NCBI GenBank assembly: GCA_021613535.1
Contig: CP075494.1
Span: 14,756,001-14,820,000 of the forward strand
Length of the DNA stretch: 64,000 bases
Direction of reading: 5' to 3'
DNA from: Adineta vaga
Lineage: Eukaryota; Animalia; Rotifera
The notes under the pieces were generated by a model. The model was not told where the DNA came from, ran no database searches, and saw nothing but the letters and a program-made list of their open reading frames with translations. Position 1 is the first letter of the stretch. Every line of letters starts with the position of its first letter. Positions 3,374 through 11,623 of this stretch are shown here, one piece after another. Both the position numbers and the translations under genes were made by a program.

Positions 3374-5893
3374 TTATTTCGATATGTTATGAGACGATAA
3401 ACGTGGTTTATCACCGAATATTGCTGGAAATGTTTTTCCATCTGGAAATTGTGCTTGATGTTCTTCAAGAATTTGATTTTTCATTAAACAAGATTCTCGA
3501 TACTGAAAAACGAAAACACATTTCTTTCAATCATGATTAAAGCTGCATGACATACTTTTATTGCTTTTTGTAACATTTGTTTTGTATCGAGTGGAACATT
3601 GAGTTGTTCAATACAATCATTATAATTAAATATGGATGTCATTCGACCAGATGAATCGACAAGTTTGATTTCTAATACTGAATCTAGATGTTCTAAATTT
3701 TTTCGATAGATAGAAATTTTTGTACCATTAATATGCGTAAACTAAATATGTATTGAGTTTATTTTTGTTTAATGAAGAAATAGAATGATTACTTACATCA
3801 AATTCAATAGATGTTTCCATTAGACGACATTTACCATCATTTGTATACATTATTATCTTACATCGAAGTGAACGAATGATATTCACAAATCTAAATCGAA
3901 GGTAAGATAGTTTTATCTCTTTATTATTGTATTCATTTACTTCCATGCTCGACGATATTTACTATGATACTGTTCAGGTAATGTATCGAATGTGTATTGT
4001 TCATAGATTGTTGGTAAGGAAAGTGGACCTTCACTTTCAATATAAGAATTATATTGTTTTCGATCAGGTCGATAGTATATAATCTAGAAAACGAAAATGA
4101 ATCTGTGATAGGATATGGAAATCGATTTGTACCTTTTGTCCATCGGATGAAACTCGAAATACATCGACAATACGTTTTGAACCAGTTTTAGCTTCGACAA
4201 GATGTTGAATAACAACTTCTCCATCATCTAATACATCCATCTAAATATGTCAAGATTTTCGTTAACAAATCAATTCGAATTCTTTAACTTACAATATCAC
4301 TTTTGGTGATAACATGTCGACGATCGAGACGTTGCGTATTCAATGGAATTAATTTTTCATTGATAAATTTACGATGACTTAGACTATTCGTATTACTTAA
4401 ATTATTACAACTTAATACCGATGTTGATGACGCATTTCTACATGATCAAACAAGAAATAATTTAAATGCATTCTTCTTCGATTCAATTCAATTACATTTT
4501 CTGACTTTTACTGATCATTAATGGTGGTAATGAATTTAGAATTGTAGGACCTCTTGATTCATTCGCTGGTTGCCGACTTGAAAGTGATGTATCAAAATAT
4601 CCACTATCACTTCTTAATGACTGAAACGTATTTTCAAAATTCAGAAACAACAAACACGAAAATTATCTATTTTTACATACAGTTGAACTAGTTCTTGATG
4701 AATTCATTCGATCATTTAATTGACGTTTTAATAGAAATGGATGATTACGAATTTGCATCAATGTTAAACGTCTTTTGGCATCTTTTTGTAAAATTCGATT
4801 GATTAAATCTTTCGCTTCGTAACTTAAACCTTCTGGTAAAACATATCGAACATTTGCAACTCGTTTTAATGTTGAAAGAACATCTACAACAAACAAAAAG
4901 TTCATTTCCAATTTCATTTAACAACTCAGATACAAACCTTGATCATCAAATGGTGGTTTTCCAACTAAACATTGATACATAAGTGCACCTAACGACCATA
5001 TATCTGCTTCGAAACTATGGGCTTTTCGTGTTGCAATTTCAGGTGCAAGAAAGTTCGGCGTACCAACCATAGTAAAATTTGATTGTTCATGAGTTATTAA
5101 TTGTTTTGCTAAACCAAAATCAGCGATTTTCTAAATGAAAAAAAAGTAAATATTTTAATGAAAGAATCTTTTCAAATCAACATACGACATTATTTTCTTT
5201 TGTTAGAAGAAGATTATGTAATTTCAGATCACGATGAAGTATTTGATGTGAATGTAAATATTCAATACCCGCCACGATTTGTTTTATATAATGACGTGCT
5301 TTTAGAAAGAGAGAGAAAAGAAAACTTTCAAAATTGTTTTGGAAATTCATCTTACTTTCATCTTCAGTAAATTGTTGACGAATATTTAAATATTTCTGCA
5401 TATCTGTTGCACATAATTCAAGAACTAGATATATATTAGTATCATCTTCGAACACTTCAAGCAACTGAAATGAAGATTAAAAATGAAAAGATAATCGTAA
5501 AAATGTTCACGTACTTGTACAATAGTCGTATTACGTAGACGATAATGTATTTGGACTTCTTCATTGACACGTGATTGAGCATTTTTTAATTTTAATTGTT
5601 GTTTATCCATCTATAAAAAGATTTTTTATTATTTTTATTTGTGAAGAAAAAAACGAAAGAATACTTACAATTTTAATAGCGACATCAAATTTATCACATA
5701 ATCGAATACCTCGATAAACTTTTGCAAAACCACCGGTACCAATTAATTCAAATTTATCATAATTCTAATAATCATAATAGATTTTCATAAAAAAACAAAA
5801 AGTCCATTAGAAAATAATTCTTACTTTAATAGAATCAAGATTAATACATCGATCACATGAATGTGGAGTCCATTCAGCTGCACTTACAGCCAT
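3374..5893 (-). CDS. PLK4: Polo-like kinase 4 (SAK), multi-exon
   Basis: Kinase motifs IGTGGFAKVY, VAIK, HRDLKLHN, KIADFGLA, GTPNFLAPE; DSGYFDT degron-like motif; cryptic polo box signatures LIPLNTQRL, VSSDG, YHSKYRRAWKFVNIIRS...KCRLME, FPAIFGDKP. Confidence 0.9.
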
Positions 5894-6303
5894 GATTTCT
5901 GTTCTAAATTTAGAAGAAGAAAAAAAAAGATGAAAAGTCGATATCTAATTCTCGTAACACGAAATAATAAAATTGATTCGTTCAATGACGCAACTCATTG
6001 TTTCCCACATTTTTCCAATAATGTAACCATTCCCAAAAAATCGTACAAAATTCATCGAAAAGAAAAGATATGTGTAAGAAAATTTTGAATTAGTTTTTGA
6101 AGAAAATTTTGACTCAGATGAATAAAAGATCGGAATAACTAGAGCGCCCTCTATTTTTCTTCTTTTCTCTAGTTCGTCATTTTCTGCGAACGAGGATTGT
6201 CTCTGTGTGTGTATGATAACTTGTTTATTGTTTGTTTCGATCTCCGATCTGATCGGTTACGAATATCTTCTCGTTAGATTTTGAGTAAACAAAAAAATCG
6301 ATT

Positions 6304-9300
6304 ATGAATTTAAACACTGATAAAGAACTCAACGATTTACTCGATCTCAATGCCGTAAGTTTCAGATTTTATCAAACAAAACGAATTGATTTCTTTCTCT
6401 TAGGTAAAAAATCGAACTCGATTTCCAAATACTACAATCGAATCATCTCAACATCCTTCTCTTTCTGTATGCATCATTATTCTTGTCCTTATCAATAAAT
6501 TCTTTATCTTTTTATTCAGATGTTATGTTCAACAATTCCCTACTCAAGTGGTGCACCAATTCTATCTTCAGAAACAATTTATAGTAGTGCAAATAAAGGT
6601 TTGAATTCATTGCTTAATTATATTCATACGTATTTCTTTTCTCTTAAAGACTATTGGAATGATTGTGCATCATCAGCAACATATAACGATGGAGTATGTC
6701 GTATTTTCAATTGAAAAAAGAATAAGAAATTGTTTACATGTATATGATAGATTTATGAAGGCAGTTTTAACAATCGAGATATTCTTCATCCATTTATAAC
6801 CAATGAATCTTTGAATAATATTTCGTCAAATCTTGTATGAGATTTAATTAAAATAATATGTCGAATTCTCTTTCTTCTTTTTTTTTATAGATTTCACGAA
6901 CTACGACAACTGATCAAACTTATTCAGGTTTATAATTAATTCATCGATTGTTTGCAGTCTTCACGTTTTTCTTTTCTATTTAATAGAAAAACTTGAGGAG
7001 AAAACGCACCGATCAACTAATGTAAGTAATGACTTTTGATCATTTCTTTTTTGTTGCTCTCTTACTATGTATATATATATATATATATATATAATTAAAT
7101 TGACGTCAATGATTAACCACTCTTGAAAATTGTTAAACGTTCATTAGATATTTATTGTTTGTCGTCGACATGAAAGTTATCTCTGTTTAAAATCAAACAG
7201 AAGTTTTGTTGAATAAGAAAAGATTTCTTTTAATCATATATCTTTATTTTTTTCTTGTCACATCAGACGTTGACGTGTGAGTAATTGATATAATTATTTG
7301 CTGTCTCTGTTTCTGACATGACGACATCTTTCTTCTGTCGGAAGATCGATTGAGAACAACTTCGCTAATTCACTCGATGATAAATTAAGATGAATGAAGA
7401 GACAATGACAATGGATTGTCTTCATATTTCTTTCTTTCGCACTCTTAAGAAAGAAACTTACGGTTGATTAACAACAATCATCTTTCTCCTCTTACTGACT
7501 TTTTATATTCGTCGTATTTTCTATTGAAAAATGTGTATATGTGCACCAGCTGGTCCAATGACATGAATATATTGTGAACGAATGAATTTCAAGAGAATAA
7601 GAGAGGTTCGCTTCGTCTATCAACTATATACAATGGGCTTGATTGTATGTGTATTGTCTGACCGAAGTCGTGTGTATGTGATAAAATTAATAGTTGTGTT
7701 TATCTACATTCGATGGCACACGAACGAGCTTTCCAGCTGCGCTACGAGCTTTCCTCTTTGTAAACATTATGTACGCTTAGCGGTAAATGTAAAAAGGACA
7801 AACAACGTAATAAACGTTAGTAGTCATGTTGGCTCTCTCTCTCTCTCTTTCTTGCTTGAAGATGTCGTGAGATATGATAATAGATATTCGATTGTTACTA
7901 CTGCTTGTTTCCAACAATGATAAATGGATAAAAAAAGAGAGAGAAAAGAGGCGCTAATCGACTTTGCGCATATATACAAAAGAACAAAGCTTGTGTAATA
8001 ATTGTTCGACGACATAAACAACGAGATAATAAAGAAAGAAGTCTAATGAGAAATATAGCTTGAGGAAAAGATTTTTGCTTCTTCTTCTCTTTTACTTTCA
8101 TAGTGATCTCGACAAAGAACTATCACTACAAGCTAGGATCTTCATTCGTTCCAAATCTATTTCTTTATATACAGTTGTTTATCTTCAGATACGGAGGGCA
8201 ATTCATTCACCCGGGCGCATGATGCCTGCTCGAGATACGAGCCTTTGTCTTTACATTTATTTCACCTTCTCTGTCTTCCGCTAAAAGACTACAGCAAACA
8301 AAAAAAGCAGAGGAAGAAACGCGCGCGCAAGAGAGAGAAATGATGATTTTTTTATGTGTCTTGTTTCTCTCTTTCCTGTTCGTACCCCCGCCTCTAGTTA
8401 ACACATCGCAAGATAAGGATATCTCGCTGTTCCAGTGAAAGGTCTCCCGCATCGATCGACTCTCCCTTCTCTTCCTTTTTCTTCTTTCTCTTTCTTTTTC
8501 GATGCATATCACTTTTTCCCTCTTTTCTGTGCTATCAAGCAGTGCTACATGTAGATACGACGAGTTTATTTGACACAACAATTATAAGTCAATTTTATTT
8601 CATCTTCTCTCTTTTTTTTGGACTAACTGTGATGAACTAATCATTCATTTTCTTTCTCAAAACACAATATATAAATGTTCTACTATTCTCGGCCATCGTA
8701 TCAGGTAAGCAATGGAAGAAAAGACGAAATCTTCAGAGATAATTTTTTTGTACAAAAGACTAAGACCTTCTTATTGTACCTCTAAAATTTTTACAATTTG
8801 TATCGGATTAAGAAGAATACGAAGAGTAATTGTCACCTTCGTCTTTAGGTCAAATACGAGCAAGATGAAGAGAAAAAATAAGTTTTTTTTCGTCATTTCA
8901 TTGTTTGCCTTTAATTGCAATTGATCGAATAAAAAAAGAAAGATAATGCTAATCAATACATTATCTTGCTCAATCGAATGATGTGAATGTCAGCATGAAT
9001 TGCGCTCGTACGTCCTTTGATCTCGTGCCGAGTGAGCACAAACAAACGAATCTTTCTCTCTGATATTCTCTTGATTAGCCAACATTGATATCAGTGGGTG
9101 ATCGAGTTAGTTTTCTCGAATGATACGTTACTGTCGTTAGTCTTAAGTTCGAATGTGTAACTGTTGATCTTCGTTCCTTTTTGATGAAATTGGGTTCTCC
9201 TATAGATGTTTATTACTGGTAAATGTGTATATGCTATGCTTCAATTAGAAAAAGAAGAAGAAGAAGAAGACGAAGGCGACGAAGGAGGAGAATAATAATA

Positions 9301-11623
9301 ATAATCGAACATCGCGAGGGAAAAATAATTAGAATTGATTTTTGCTATGGAAATGTCTGATGAAGAAAGCACTTGTGTAATTTATCGTCAAAGGAAAAGA
9401 ACTAAAGCGTTTGCACATGAGGTCAATCAAAACAACTTAGATATTAATAGGCTAAAGACGTTCGTTATACAATCATTACGTCTTCTTTTTTCTGTTTTAT
9501 TAGGTCTACACATCGGATGATTATAATCCCGAGAATGCTGGACGATATCCAACGGGAAAATCAGCTTACGGAAACGATTCAACATATTATGTTGGTAAGG
9601 GAATTATTAATCAAAGAGAAAAAATGTAGACTTCTTTATTCTTCATCATTTACTAATGAATAGATGGTCAAAATGGTGGTCCATGGCTGCCACCACCACC
9701 AACAACATCAACTTATTTATCGAATGATCTTAGTACTGCTCATGGAACTTTTACCGATGCAGCAGGTTCATGCTTACCATCCATGGCAAGTTTTCGATCG
9801 CAACAAGCAGTAGTAGCAGCAGCATACACGAATAATGGCAATGAACAAACAGTACAAACCGGAGAAACACTGGGAAAAGCACTTCAATCTGTATGAAATT
9901 ACTACTTGAAAAATGAATTCTTGAAAAACTTCTTTATTTTTCATAGATCTATCCAAATGATCATCCATATTCTTCAACACCATCGACTTCCGTCTCTCCT
10001 CCTCCATTGAATGGTACATAACAAAAGAAAAGAGAATTTCTCACAGAAAAAAAAACACAATTTGTTTTCTCATTTTACTCAGGATCTAGTCCATCGTGGG
10101 TTGCTGCACCAACAGTTAATCAATCCTATCACAATCAATTACATCCTCTCGTAAGTTTTTCATCAATCAAGATAAGATAATAATAAAAAAAGCATACCTA
10201 TCTAACCTATTAATCTCTAATCTCAGACAACTCTAGTCGATTTGAATGATGAACCGTACTATTTGCTCAATCTAAATGAGGTTTGTCTATTCATTGGGTG
10301 ATGGAAATTCAGTTCTTTAGATTGTTATTGATAATGGAAATGGTATAATATTCTATTTTTTAGCCACCACGATTAGATGTCGATGATCCATTTCGTCAAC
10401 CATCAACAGATTATCATCATTATTATGCTGGTTATCATCATCCACATTCCACTGGACCTTATTCGGCATTTCTAACTCATCCAACAAGTTTACATCCACT
10501 ACCACCACCAACAACATCTGATACATCCTCACGAAATCGACATCATGATCCATATTTAACATGTAAGATCTATTGAAAAAAAAGCTAAGTAACTGACGTT
10601 TATCTTTAACTCTTCATTTAGATCCTAATCCGCCATCGACATCATCTTCAACATCATCAGTGGATGCCAATGCTGGTACCAATTCAGACTTGAAAGTTGA
10701 ATGCATCGATAAAGCTAAACCAGATAGTGAAAATAAACCACCGCCACCTCTATCAAAGACAACACCGAATGCATCATCACAATTAACAACCGATAGATTA
10801 AATGAATTTAACCTTCGACAACAAACATTAACAGATATTTCGCAAGAAAATGCATCACCATTGACAGTTGCTATCGGCGGAACAACAAATAATGTACATA
10901 TTGGTCCATCATCATCATCGTCATCTAAATTTCGAAAGTAAATAGAAAAGAAATTGAATTAAATATCTAAATGTTAAATTTTCCTTTTGTATTCTTTTCT
11001 AGTTCTTTGGCACTTAGTCCAAATAGTCAAATGAATCTTTCATGTATGCGTGGGGGACCTGGTTCGGAAGGTAGTATCGATCCAGATGAAACTCCTGAAG
11101 AACGTGAACGACGAGAGAAAGATCGACGAGCAGCAAATAATGCTCGAGAAAGGCAAGAATTTATCGACAATCTTTGTATTTTCTTCAAATTTATCGTTGT
11201 TATTTGTTTTTCTTCTTCAGATTACGTGTGCGAGATATTAACGATGCATTTAAAGAACTCGGTCGAATGTGCTCAATTCATATGCGTAATGATAAACCCG
11301 TTACAAAACTAGGTGTACTTCAACAAGCAGTGAATCTAATAACATCACTTGAACAACAAGTTCGAGGTATGAACTTATTTGTTTCTAAAGAAAACCCATT
11401 TGAAATGTTCGCTTTGGACTTTCCTTTATCAGAACGAAATTTAAATCCGAAAGCTGCATGTCTACGTCGACGTGAAGAAGAAAAATCTGAAGATATGAAT
11501 TTAGGTGGAGTTATGCCACCTCCAAATGGAAATCTTATGTCAACCGAATCATCTTCAATTGATGGTTCGAATTATTTGGAACAGATGCATCAATCTATTC
11601 CTCCATCTTATTGGCAACAATGA
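6304..11623 (+). CDS. Class I bHLH E-protein (TCF3/TCF4/TCF12, daughterless orthologue), many small exons
   Basis: AD1-like [10 protein letters not shown]; LGKALQSIY motif; b[30 protein letters not shown]...[39 protein letters not shown]. Phases of exons 1-7 were checked and are in frame. Confidence 0.95.
7070..7092. repeat. (TA)n microsatellite
   Basis: Direct reading. A similar (TA)n lies at about 47603-47622. Confidence 0.9.
8675..8704 (+). CDS. Putative alternative first coding exon of the E-protein ([10 protein letters not shown])
   Basis: ATG at 8675, 10 codons, consensus CAG|GTAAG donor in phase 0, in frame with the exon starting at 9504 (VYTSDDYN). Confidence 0.65.

Follow-up and report, generated by a model that had tools for sequence, protein, structure and literature searches.

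An internal alternative first exon in the E-protein gene of the bdelloid rotifer Adineta vaga, and its likeness to the vertebrate HEBAlt and TCF4-A forms

E-proteins are the obligate partners of tissue-specific basic helix-loop-helix (bHLH) factors in all animals, and in vertebrates the short "Alt" (alternative) forms of HEB and TCF4 play parts of their own in the biology of lymphocytes and of the nervous system. Does an invertebrate E-protein gene also have an internal first exon from which such a short form is made? The question is raised by a locus of the bdelloid rotifer Adineta vaga lying in a stretch of 64,000 nucleotides (nt) of contig CP075494.1 (positions 14,756,001 to 14,820,000; the whole stretch is called the window below). 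The genome carrying the window comprises 100.8 Mb in six contigs, with approximately 30% G+C. The E-protein gene (class I bHLH, daughterless/TCF12-type) spans approximately positions 6304–11623 of the window on the plus strand. A reading of this DNA made from the sequence alone (hereafter the sequence-only reading) had proposed that the large intron of the gene contains a mini-exon opening an isoform without the N-terminal AD1 domain. We find this Alt exon to be almost certainly a real, translated alternative first exon, because an RNA junction joins it to the downstream exon and because it is conserved, rather than because of its sequence pattern alone.

The letters are exactly as that reading gave them: a ten-codon open reading frame (ORF) starting with ATG 8675 is followed directly by the donor GTAAG, lies in the gene's only large intron (7022–9503), and joins the exon beginning at 9504 in phase 0. 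An in-frame TAA (8672–8674) adjoins the ATG upstream, and the acceptor AG occupies 9502–9503. The same intron holds 42 phase-0 mini-ORFs of 5–41 codons running from an ATG to a GT, a GTRAG donor being found at the Alt one only. By sequence alone, then, the Alt mini-ORF is not beyond chance; it is the RNA junction and the conservation that make it real.

Four RNA runs were compared with positions 5500–10950: X1 and X2, which belong to one study and one organism, X5, from another organism, and X6, from a third. The first three are plainly cDNA, their contigs skipping twelve introns between 6354 and 10622 at GT..AG borders and giving no cover within them. The canonical joint 7021->9504, before which lie seven short coding exons, is present in each of the three. 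The junction 8704->9504, at which the sequence-only reading had expected splicing, was recovered in two of them. In X1 a contig covering 8613–8702 is joined to 9504 onward, and in X2 a contig covering 8529–8706 runs on into CTACACATC, which is 9506–9514 and thus belongs to the first letters of the 9504 exon. A further X1 contig covers 8505–8618. Since depth is zero at 7138–8229 and again at 8776–9321, the transcribed block is a discrete exon and not retained intron. The contig depths are unable to rank the canonical against the Alt isoform. An apparent X1 joint 8445->8561 was rejected as a splice, being non-canonical and due to a transcript of the ohnologue (the second copy of the gene, described below) that aligns across a deletion in that copy; a loose end at 8594 likewise spells ohnologue sequence. 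Because its transcript appears at these two places, the ohnologue copy of the Alt exon is also expressed. As to X6, which is RNA by guess, its contigs are identical to the window within the intron (7782–7932) and across the 9504 border (9100–9540); it behaves like DNA or unspliced RNA and is therefore silent on splicing.

A search with window positions 9666–9890 returned a protein of 476 amino acids (P0009) opening with the Alt peptide, and P0009 as query led to four others of the Alt type on contigs of transcript size (P0018, P0019, P0034 and P0039). The window's own Alt isoform is present, exon for exon, in GenBank as "hypothetical protein I4U23_026670 [Adineta vaga]" (P0020). The exon had been described as hidden; it is not, as the public gene model already starts with the Alt peptide, though the exon is unnamed there. 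P0020 has 494 amino acids, contains no L[LF]D[FLI] motif and retains the bHLH domain and the C-terminus, so that the predicted absence of AD1 is borne out. Ten Alt residues replace approximately 158 N-terminal residues of the canonical form, and with AD1 goes a basic cluster, ...KTHRSTN (KTHR here, KTRR in relatives), which stands just before the junction.

For the ohnologue, the public model (I4U23_006553, 466 amino acids) opens with another ten-residue exon, MTLLHYEPYL, approximately 1.3 kb upstream of the exon beginning MFYY (L007, G000:C2:2513000-2522999, minus strand; reverse-complement positions 1449–1478 and 2771–2800). The window shows no conservation of the MTLLHYEPYL exon, whereas the ohnologue's MFYY exon is both conserved and transcribed; the first exon of this model is probably a mis-call.

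The sequence-only reading had named two findings that would refute it, a missing 8704->9504 junction and a lack of conservation. The junction is present in RNA, and across the Bdelloidea orthologous loci, like the ohnologue, retain both the mini-ORF and the donor that follows it. The ohnologue on C2 (L007, minus strand) encodes the same ten residues with two synonymous third-position changes, and its alignment with the window collapses directly after the donor GTA. Scans of the homologous intron found the ten-residue exon in Rotaria socialis, with donor GTATGA, and in Didymodactylos carnosus, as MFYYTRPSYQ/GTAAAC with the single change S5T; the E-protein of the latter is overall only about 50% identical to that of the window. 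Taking the seven loci or transcripts that were found without constraining the peptide, the variable sites fall at codon positions 1, 2 and 3 in the numbers 2, 0 and 6, with one amino-acid change, the conservative S5T, and the 30 nt on either side of the Alt codons are at chance identity. The donor GT is kept in every homologous locus. A degenerate DNA pattern in addition located the mini-exon on 15 metagenome contigs of several sequence types, 680–800 nt upstream of the VYT..DYN exon and, on those contigs long enough to show it, downstream of the KL.EKT.RS.N exon. That pattern forced the exact peptide and donor, and these 15 contigs accordingly show position and synonymous variation and were excluded from the codon-position count. 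Because variation is concentrated at third positions and the flanks are at chance, three bdelloid families keep the Alt exon under coding constraint. To judge from these alignments, purifying selection on it is strong in all bdelloid families sampled, and both ohnologues have kept it.

That the Alt exon is a first exon is indicated by three mRNA contigs of other bdelloids (L028, L029 and L030), because their 5' untranslated regions (5'UTRs), 142, 29 and 256 nt long, run colinear with the genomic sequence ahead of the mini-exon; none includes canonical exons. The longest of these (L030) begins at the equivalent of window 8388. The 5' ends of Alt contigs lie at 8505 and 8529 for the window, at approximately the 8388 equivalent for L030 and at approximately 8378–8412 for an ohnologue contig. 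Transcription therefore reaches further upstream than the 8600–8670 interval that had been proposed, and probably starts approximately 290–300 nt upstream of ATG 8675, near 8370–8390. We infer an internal promoter because L030 begins at the 8388 equivalent and because about 1 kb of sequence upstream is conserved. As for the ATG triplets upstream of ATG 8675, that at 8632 opens a two-codon ORF and is not kept in the ohnologue, and that at 8502 is kept in L030; the upstream ATGs may possibly exert translational control.

Upstream of the Alt exon, segments 7238–7380 and 7581–8485 align at 70–80% with the ohnologue and other bdelloids, and three islands (7270–7301, 7868–7935 and 8567–8606) are kept even in D. 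carnosus. Such sequence is likely to be regulatory for the internal start. Downstream, the block at 8906–9116 stands in unalignable surroundings and has depth 0 in X1, X2 and X5; it is a candidate enhancer. It contains CAATTG (an E-box) and motifs of the TAATCAA and TGATTAG type. A search of 7000–9600 against Rfam gave no match, which leaves the conserved blocks outside the known RNA families.

These observations are best accounted for by a gene with two mRNAs. The canonical mRNA starts upstream, runs through seven short coding exons that include AD1 and splices 7021->9504. A second mRNA would start inside the 2.5-kb intron, probably near 8370–8390, with a first exon ending at 8704 and spliced to 9504. 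Translation from ATG 8675 would put ten residues in place of the approximately 158 N-terminal ones, giving a short protein that would lack AD1 and the basic cluster and would retain the remainder, bHLH included. We regard this statement, taken whole and with its conjectural parts, as likely.

How closely does this resemble the vertebrate forms? HEBAlt arises from an internal first exon that lies 3' of the exons encoding AD1 and has a transcription start of its own (PMC3346973, PMC9385190). The active part of its 23-residue Alt domain is the last third, from a natural Met, with a phosphorylatable YYY motif (PMC9385190). TCF4-A begins at exons 10a-c, just before the first constitutive exon 10, and lacks both AD1 and the nuclear localization signal encoded by exons 8-9, its entry into the nucleus being via dimer partners (PMC3137626). 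Vertebrate short forms differ in activation strength (PMC3137626, PMC3346973), and in human TCF4, 21 alternative 5' exons are spread along the gene (PMC3137626).

At the junction, canonical vertebrate proteins read ...PPGLPSS/VY, a short form of a ray (TCF12-like isoform X2, P0126) reads MYLCNGKT/VY, and the short forms P0119 and P0133, of vertebrate type, read ...NNSLMYCYNVKP/IY (...NVKP/IY). The rotifer exon 9504–9594 aligns with the vertebrate segment VY...[DE]Y...YP..K...DG...W, where canonical and short forms converge, and the rotifer Alt exon hence splices to the counterpart of HEB exon 9 and TCF4 exon 10. The claim of a homologous splice junction has accordingly stood up at the protein level: the Alt exon joins directly before the VY...[DE]Y...DG...W exon, the point at which the vertebrate Alt and canonical forms diverge.

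As in HEBAlt, the rotifer first exon lies inside the gene and joins the VY exon, its product lacks AD1 and has bHLH, and the N-terminal peptide is short and tyrosine-rich. Its M-F-Y-Y...Y bears a resemblance, over too few residues for a significance test, to the M-Y-[YCL]-[YC] of the last third of the vertebrate domain. Unlike HEBAlt, it has 10 rather than 23 residues, FYY and one later Y rather than YYY, and no NGK, and the intron measures 2.5 kb as against tens of kb in the vertebrate gene. In common with TCF4-A/E2-2Alt the rotifer short form also loses the basic cluster directly before the junction, a putative counterpart of the nuclear localization signal, whereas one internal start is seen in the rotifer against 21 alternative 5' exons in TCF4. 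By analogy the rotifer short form might behave like HEBAlt and TCF4-A, with weaker or differently regulated activation and nuclear entry through dimer partners, and we infer that its Alt tyrosines might be regulatory.

Outside the vertebrates, a conserved alternative E-protein form is reportedly found in sea urchin, going by the title of Schrankel et al. 2016 (Dev Biol 416:149). If that title is taken at its word, an Alt/Can (alternative/canonical) arrangement like that of the rotifer exists outside the vertebrates, the sea urchin being a deuterostome whereas the rotifer is a spiralian. Database gene models of two tubeworms, Lamellibrachia and Ridgeia (P0066, P0136), and of a krill (P0125) lack AD1 and start MFCTTYPYYRHLVYMPGK... 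and MFCPYPYYKPPLVYMG..., and the annelid and krill N-termini (MFC..YPYY) are closely alike in a protein alignment. In Lamellibrachia this N-terminus is encoded by a first exon whose donor is GTAAGT, the exon running ...GKLGA/VY in phase 0 into the next exon, VYSPNPEEF, that is, it has the same position and phase as the rotifer Alt exon. The rotifer peptide is identical to the annelid one at M1, F2, P7 and Y9 (4/10, ungapped), and differs in that the annelid peptide has approximately 21 residues after the MFC Met, with a second motif, LVYMPGK, a half which the rotifer exon does not have. The annelid LVYMPGK resembles the vertebrate-type LMYCYNVK of P0119 and P0133. Because the annelid and krill N-termini are alike and the Lamellibrachia exon occupies the same position and phase, the comparison points to an Alt exon that is old among protostomes. 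A look for canonical AD1 exons in the 10 kb ahead of the Lamellibrachia Alt exon found none, and the annelid N-terminus as query returned the two tubeworms alone in a search that requires shared five-residue words.

In the monogonont rotifer Brachionus calyciflorus the exon before VY ends ...APYYDDQ, which is tyrosine-rich and resembles the bdelloid ...PSYQ. A protein starting MYYGSD (P0090) was considered as a Brachionus Alt form and was not counted, since it may be a truncated ORF.

Several points weigh against the two-mRNA reading or against its extension to the vertebrates, and they are best taken together with the alternatives. With regard to the exon itself, the junction 8704->9504 of the window copy comes from two samples (X1 and X2) of a single study, the RNA evidence consists of assembled contigs, which are unable to show a true 5' end, and the Alt 5'UTR has upstream ATGs at 8502, 8549 and 8632, the use of ATG 8675 being read from the sequence. 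A chance ORF beside a chance GT, without function, would be in keeping with the 42 comparable mini-ORFs of the intron, and is refuted by the RNA junction, the Bdelloidea-wide conservation and the spliced mRNAs of other species; its probability is next to nil. The length of the 5'UTR and its upstream ATGs would also suit a real transcript whose mini-ORF is not a protein start, being a regulatory upstream element before a later Met or part of a non-coding transcript. We think this very improbable: the eight variable sites contain one conservative replacement (S5T) between flanks at chance identity, the ORF reads on in frame into the exons that follow, and its ATG has an A-rich context and a stop directly upstream. 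Spliced-leader trans-splicing is reported from bdelloids, and the short mRNA could in principle be cut out of canonical pre-mRNA by that route or by other intronic processing, with no internal promoter at all, a 5' end of this kind being one that contigs would not reveal. Against it stand the 142- and 256-nt 5'UTRs, genome-colinear with ends free of any foreign leader, the approximately 1 kb of conserved sequence upstream of the exon (7581–8485), as expected of a regulatory region, and the lack of any RNA cover upstream of approximately 8380, and we consider it improbable.

The origin of the exon is a more delicate matter. The Alt exon would, on the reading we lean towards by a little, descend from an ancestral Alt exon common to vertebrates, sea urchin and annelids, as its sequence and junction suggest; for the ten-residue peptide itself common descent is plausible though not provable by sequence. 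Ten residues against 23 make the similarity too short for a significance test, and the junction match with vertebrates is established at the protein level, intron phase having been compared with the annelid alone. In B. calyciflorus, moreover, no MF.YY-type mini-exon was seen either in the intron of 270 nt that precedes the VY exon or in the 2.2-kb intron, the latter being the large intron of that gene, which sits one exon further upstream (L027 3426–6006). A real Alt exon might thus have arisen independently in bdelloids, its tyrosine-rich start being convergent and the ancient intron merely a convenient promoter site; we give this view a lesser, still appreciable probability. It gains from the shortness of the peptide, with its 4/10 identity to the annelid start, Met included, from the Brachionus result, and from the 21 scattered 5' exons of human TCF4, which suggest that this family gains first exons readily (PMC3137626). 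It has to contend with the coincidence of junction and phase with the annelid exon and of junction, at the protein level, with the vertebrate short forms. The MF or MY start, the tyrosine cluster and the short length also match the part of the HEBAlt domain that is functional, its last third, and the resemblance of the annelid and krill N-termini speaks for the existence of an old protostome Alt exon. Returning to common descent, the wider proposal would be that the two-start architecture, canonical plus Alt with a phase-0 tyrosine-rich peptide before the VY exon, dates to the protostome-deuterostome ancestor, was kept by rotifers (shortened to ten residues), annelids and crustaceans and disappeared from flies and some others; here we regard the chances as evenly divided.

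The sequence-only reading had noted that the Alt exon is usually described as a vertebrate feature. That description is outdated, in view of the sea urchin title of 2016 and of the Alt-like N-termini in the tubeworm and krill models, and the rotifer case is neither hidden nor the first invertebrate Alt form. What is new is an Alt/Can E-protein gene documented in rotifers with RNA and with strong comparative evidence. The AD1-less form kept by a spiralian lends support to the view that the switch from long to short E-proteins and back is an old and general regulatory device. Should bilaterian ancestry prove true, the tyrosine cluster would be an ancient signal-responsive module and not an invention of the vertebrate immune system. 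The compactness of the locus, with its 2.5-kb intron and sharply bounded conserved blocks, suits dissection of the internal start region. The practical gain is modest, the exon being already in a public model and an invertebrate Alt form already published, as far as a title tells.

The features of the gene are collected in Table 1. Its class was assigned from the PF00010 match precomputed for P0020 and from the best non-rotifer matches, which are E2A, TCF12, TCF4 and daughterless proteins. Translation exon by exon places the AD1 core, ...DLLDL..., in the canonical first coding exon and bHLH in the last exons. Apart from the large intron, eleven introns with RNA joints measure 49–213 nt, and three further downstream approximately 65–70 nt according to the public model.

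Table 1. Features of the E-protein gene in the window (window positions, both ends included)
Feature	Positions	Strand	Evidence
Canonical coding exon 1, AD1 core	6304..6354	+	RNA joint 6354->6404 in X1, X2, X5; start as in canonical bdelloid proteins
Last canonical-only exon, phase-0 end, small basic cluster	6987..7021	+	RNA joints 6927->6987, 7021->9504
Sole large intron, 2482 nt	7022..9503	+	GT..AG joint 7021->9504 (X1, X2, X5)
Block of high conservation at or near Alt transcript 5' end, start region/5'UTR	8370..8465	+	Near-identical in ohnologue; at L030 5' end; ohnologue-derived contig covers equivalent
Alt first exon, 5'UTR plus 30 nt coding (5' end probable)	8388..8704	+	3' end exact; 5' end from relative's mRNA (L030); own contigs reach 8505
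Alt coding part, 10 codons from ATG 8675-8677	8675..8704	+	Letters read; same peptide opens P0020, P0009, P0018, P0019, P0034, P0039
Alt splice donor GTAAG	8705..8709	+	GT..AG joint, listed 8702->9502 "cut +2" = 8704->9504
Non-coding block 3' of Alt exon, 210 nt, candidate regulatory element	8906..9116	.	84% identity to ohnologue, 78% to environmental bdelloid locus L020
First exon common to both isoforms, VYTSDDYNP...YYV plus one base	9504..9594	+	Joints 7021->9504, 8704->9504, 9594->9664
Exon opening D/GQNGGPW after 69-nt intron	9664-9890	+	RNA joint, translation, P0020 match
Other shared exons	9947-10013, 10083-10150, 10364-10562, 10622-10937	+	Joints, translation, P0020 match
Other shared exons, including bHLH	11003-11152, 11221-11366, 11433-stop (to 11623)	+	Translation, P0020 match, Pfam PF00010

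The intron at 11153–11220, which splits ...ANNARER/LRVRDIN of the bHLH domain, has an apparent GC donor (GCAAG), judged by the frame and the public protein. The E-protein locus of D. carnosus contains a tandem pair of versions of a bHLH-coding exon (L024 19078–19225 and 19644–19894), and so does that of Lamellibrachia (L023 31707–31853 and 32452–32601). The Lamellibrachia gene model strings both versions together; the A. vaga window holds one only. Such tandem exons are reminiscent of the mutually exclusive E12/E47 exons of vertebrate E2A.

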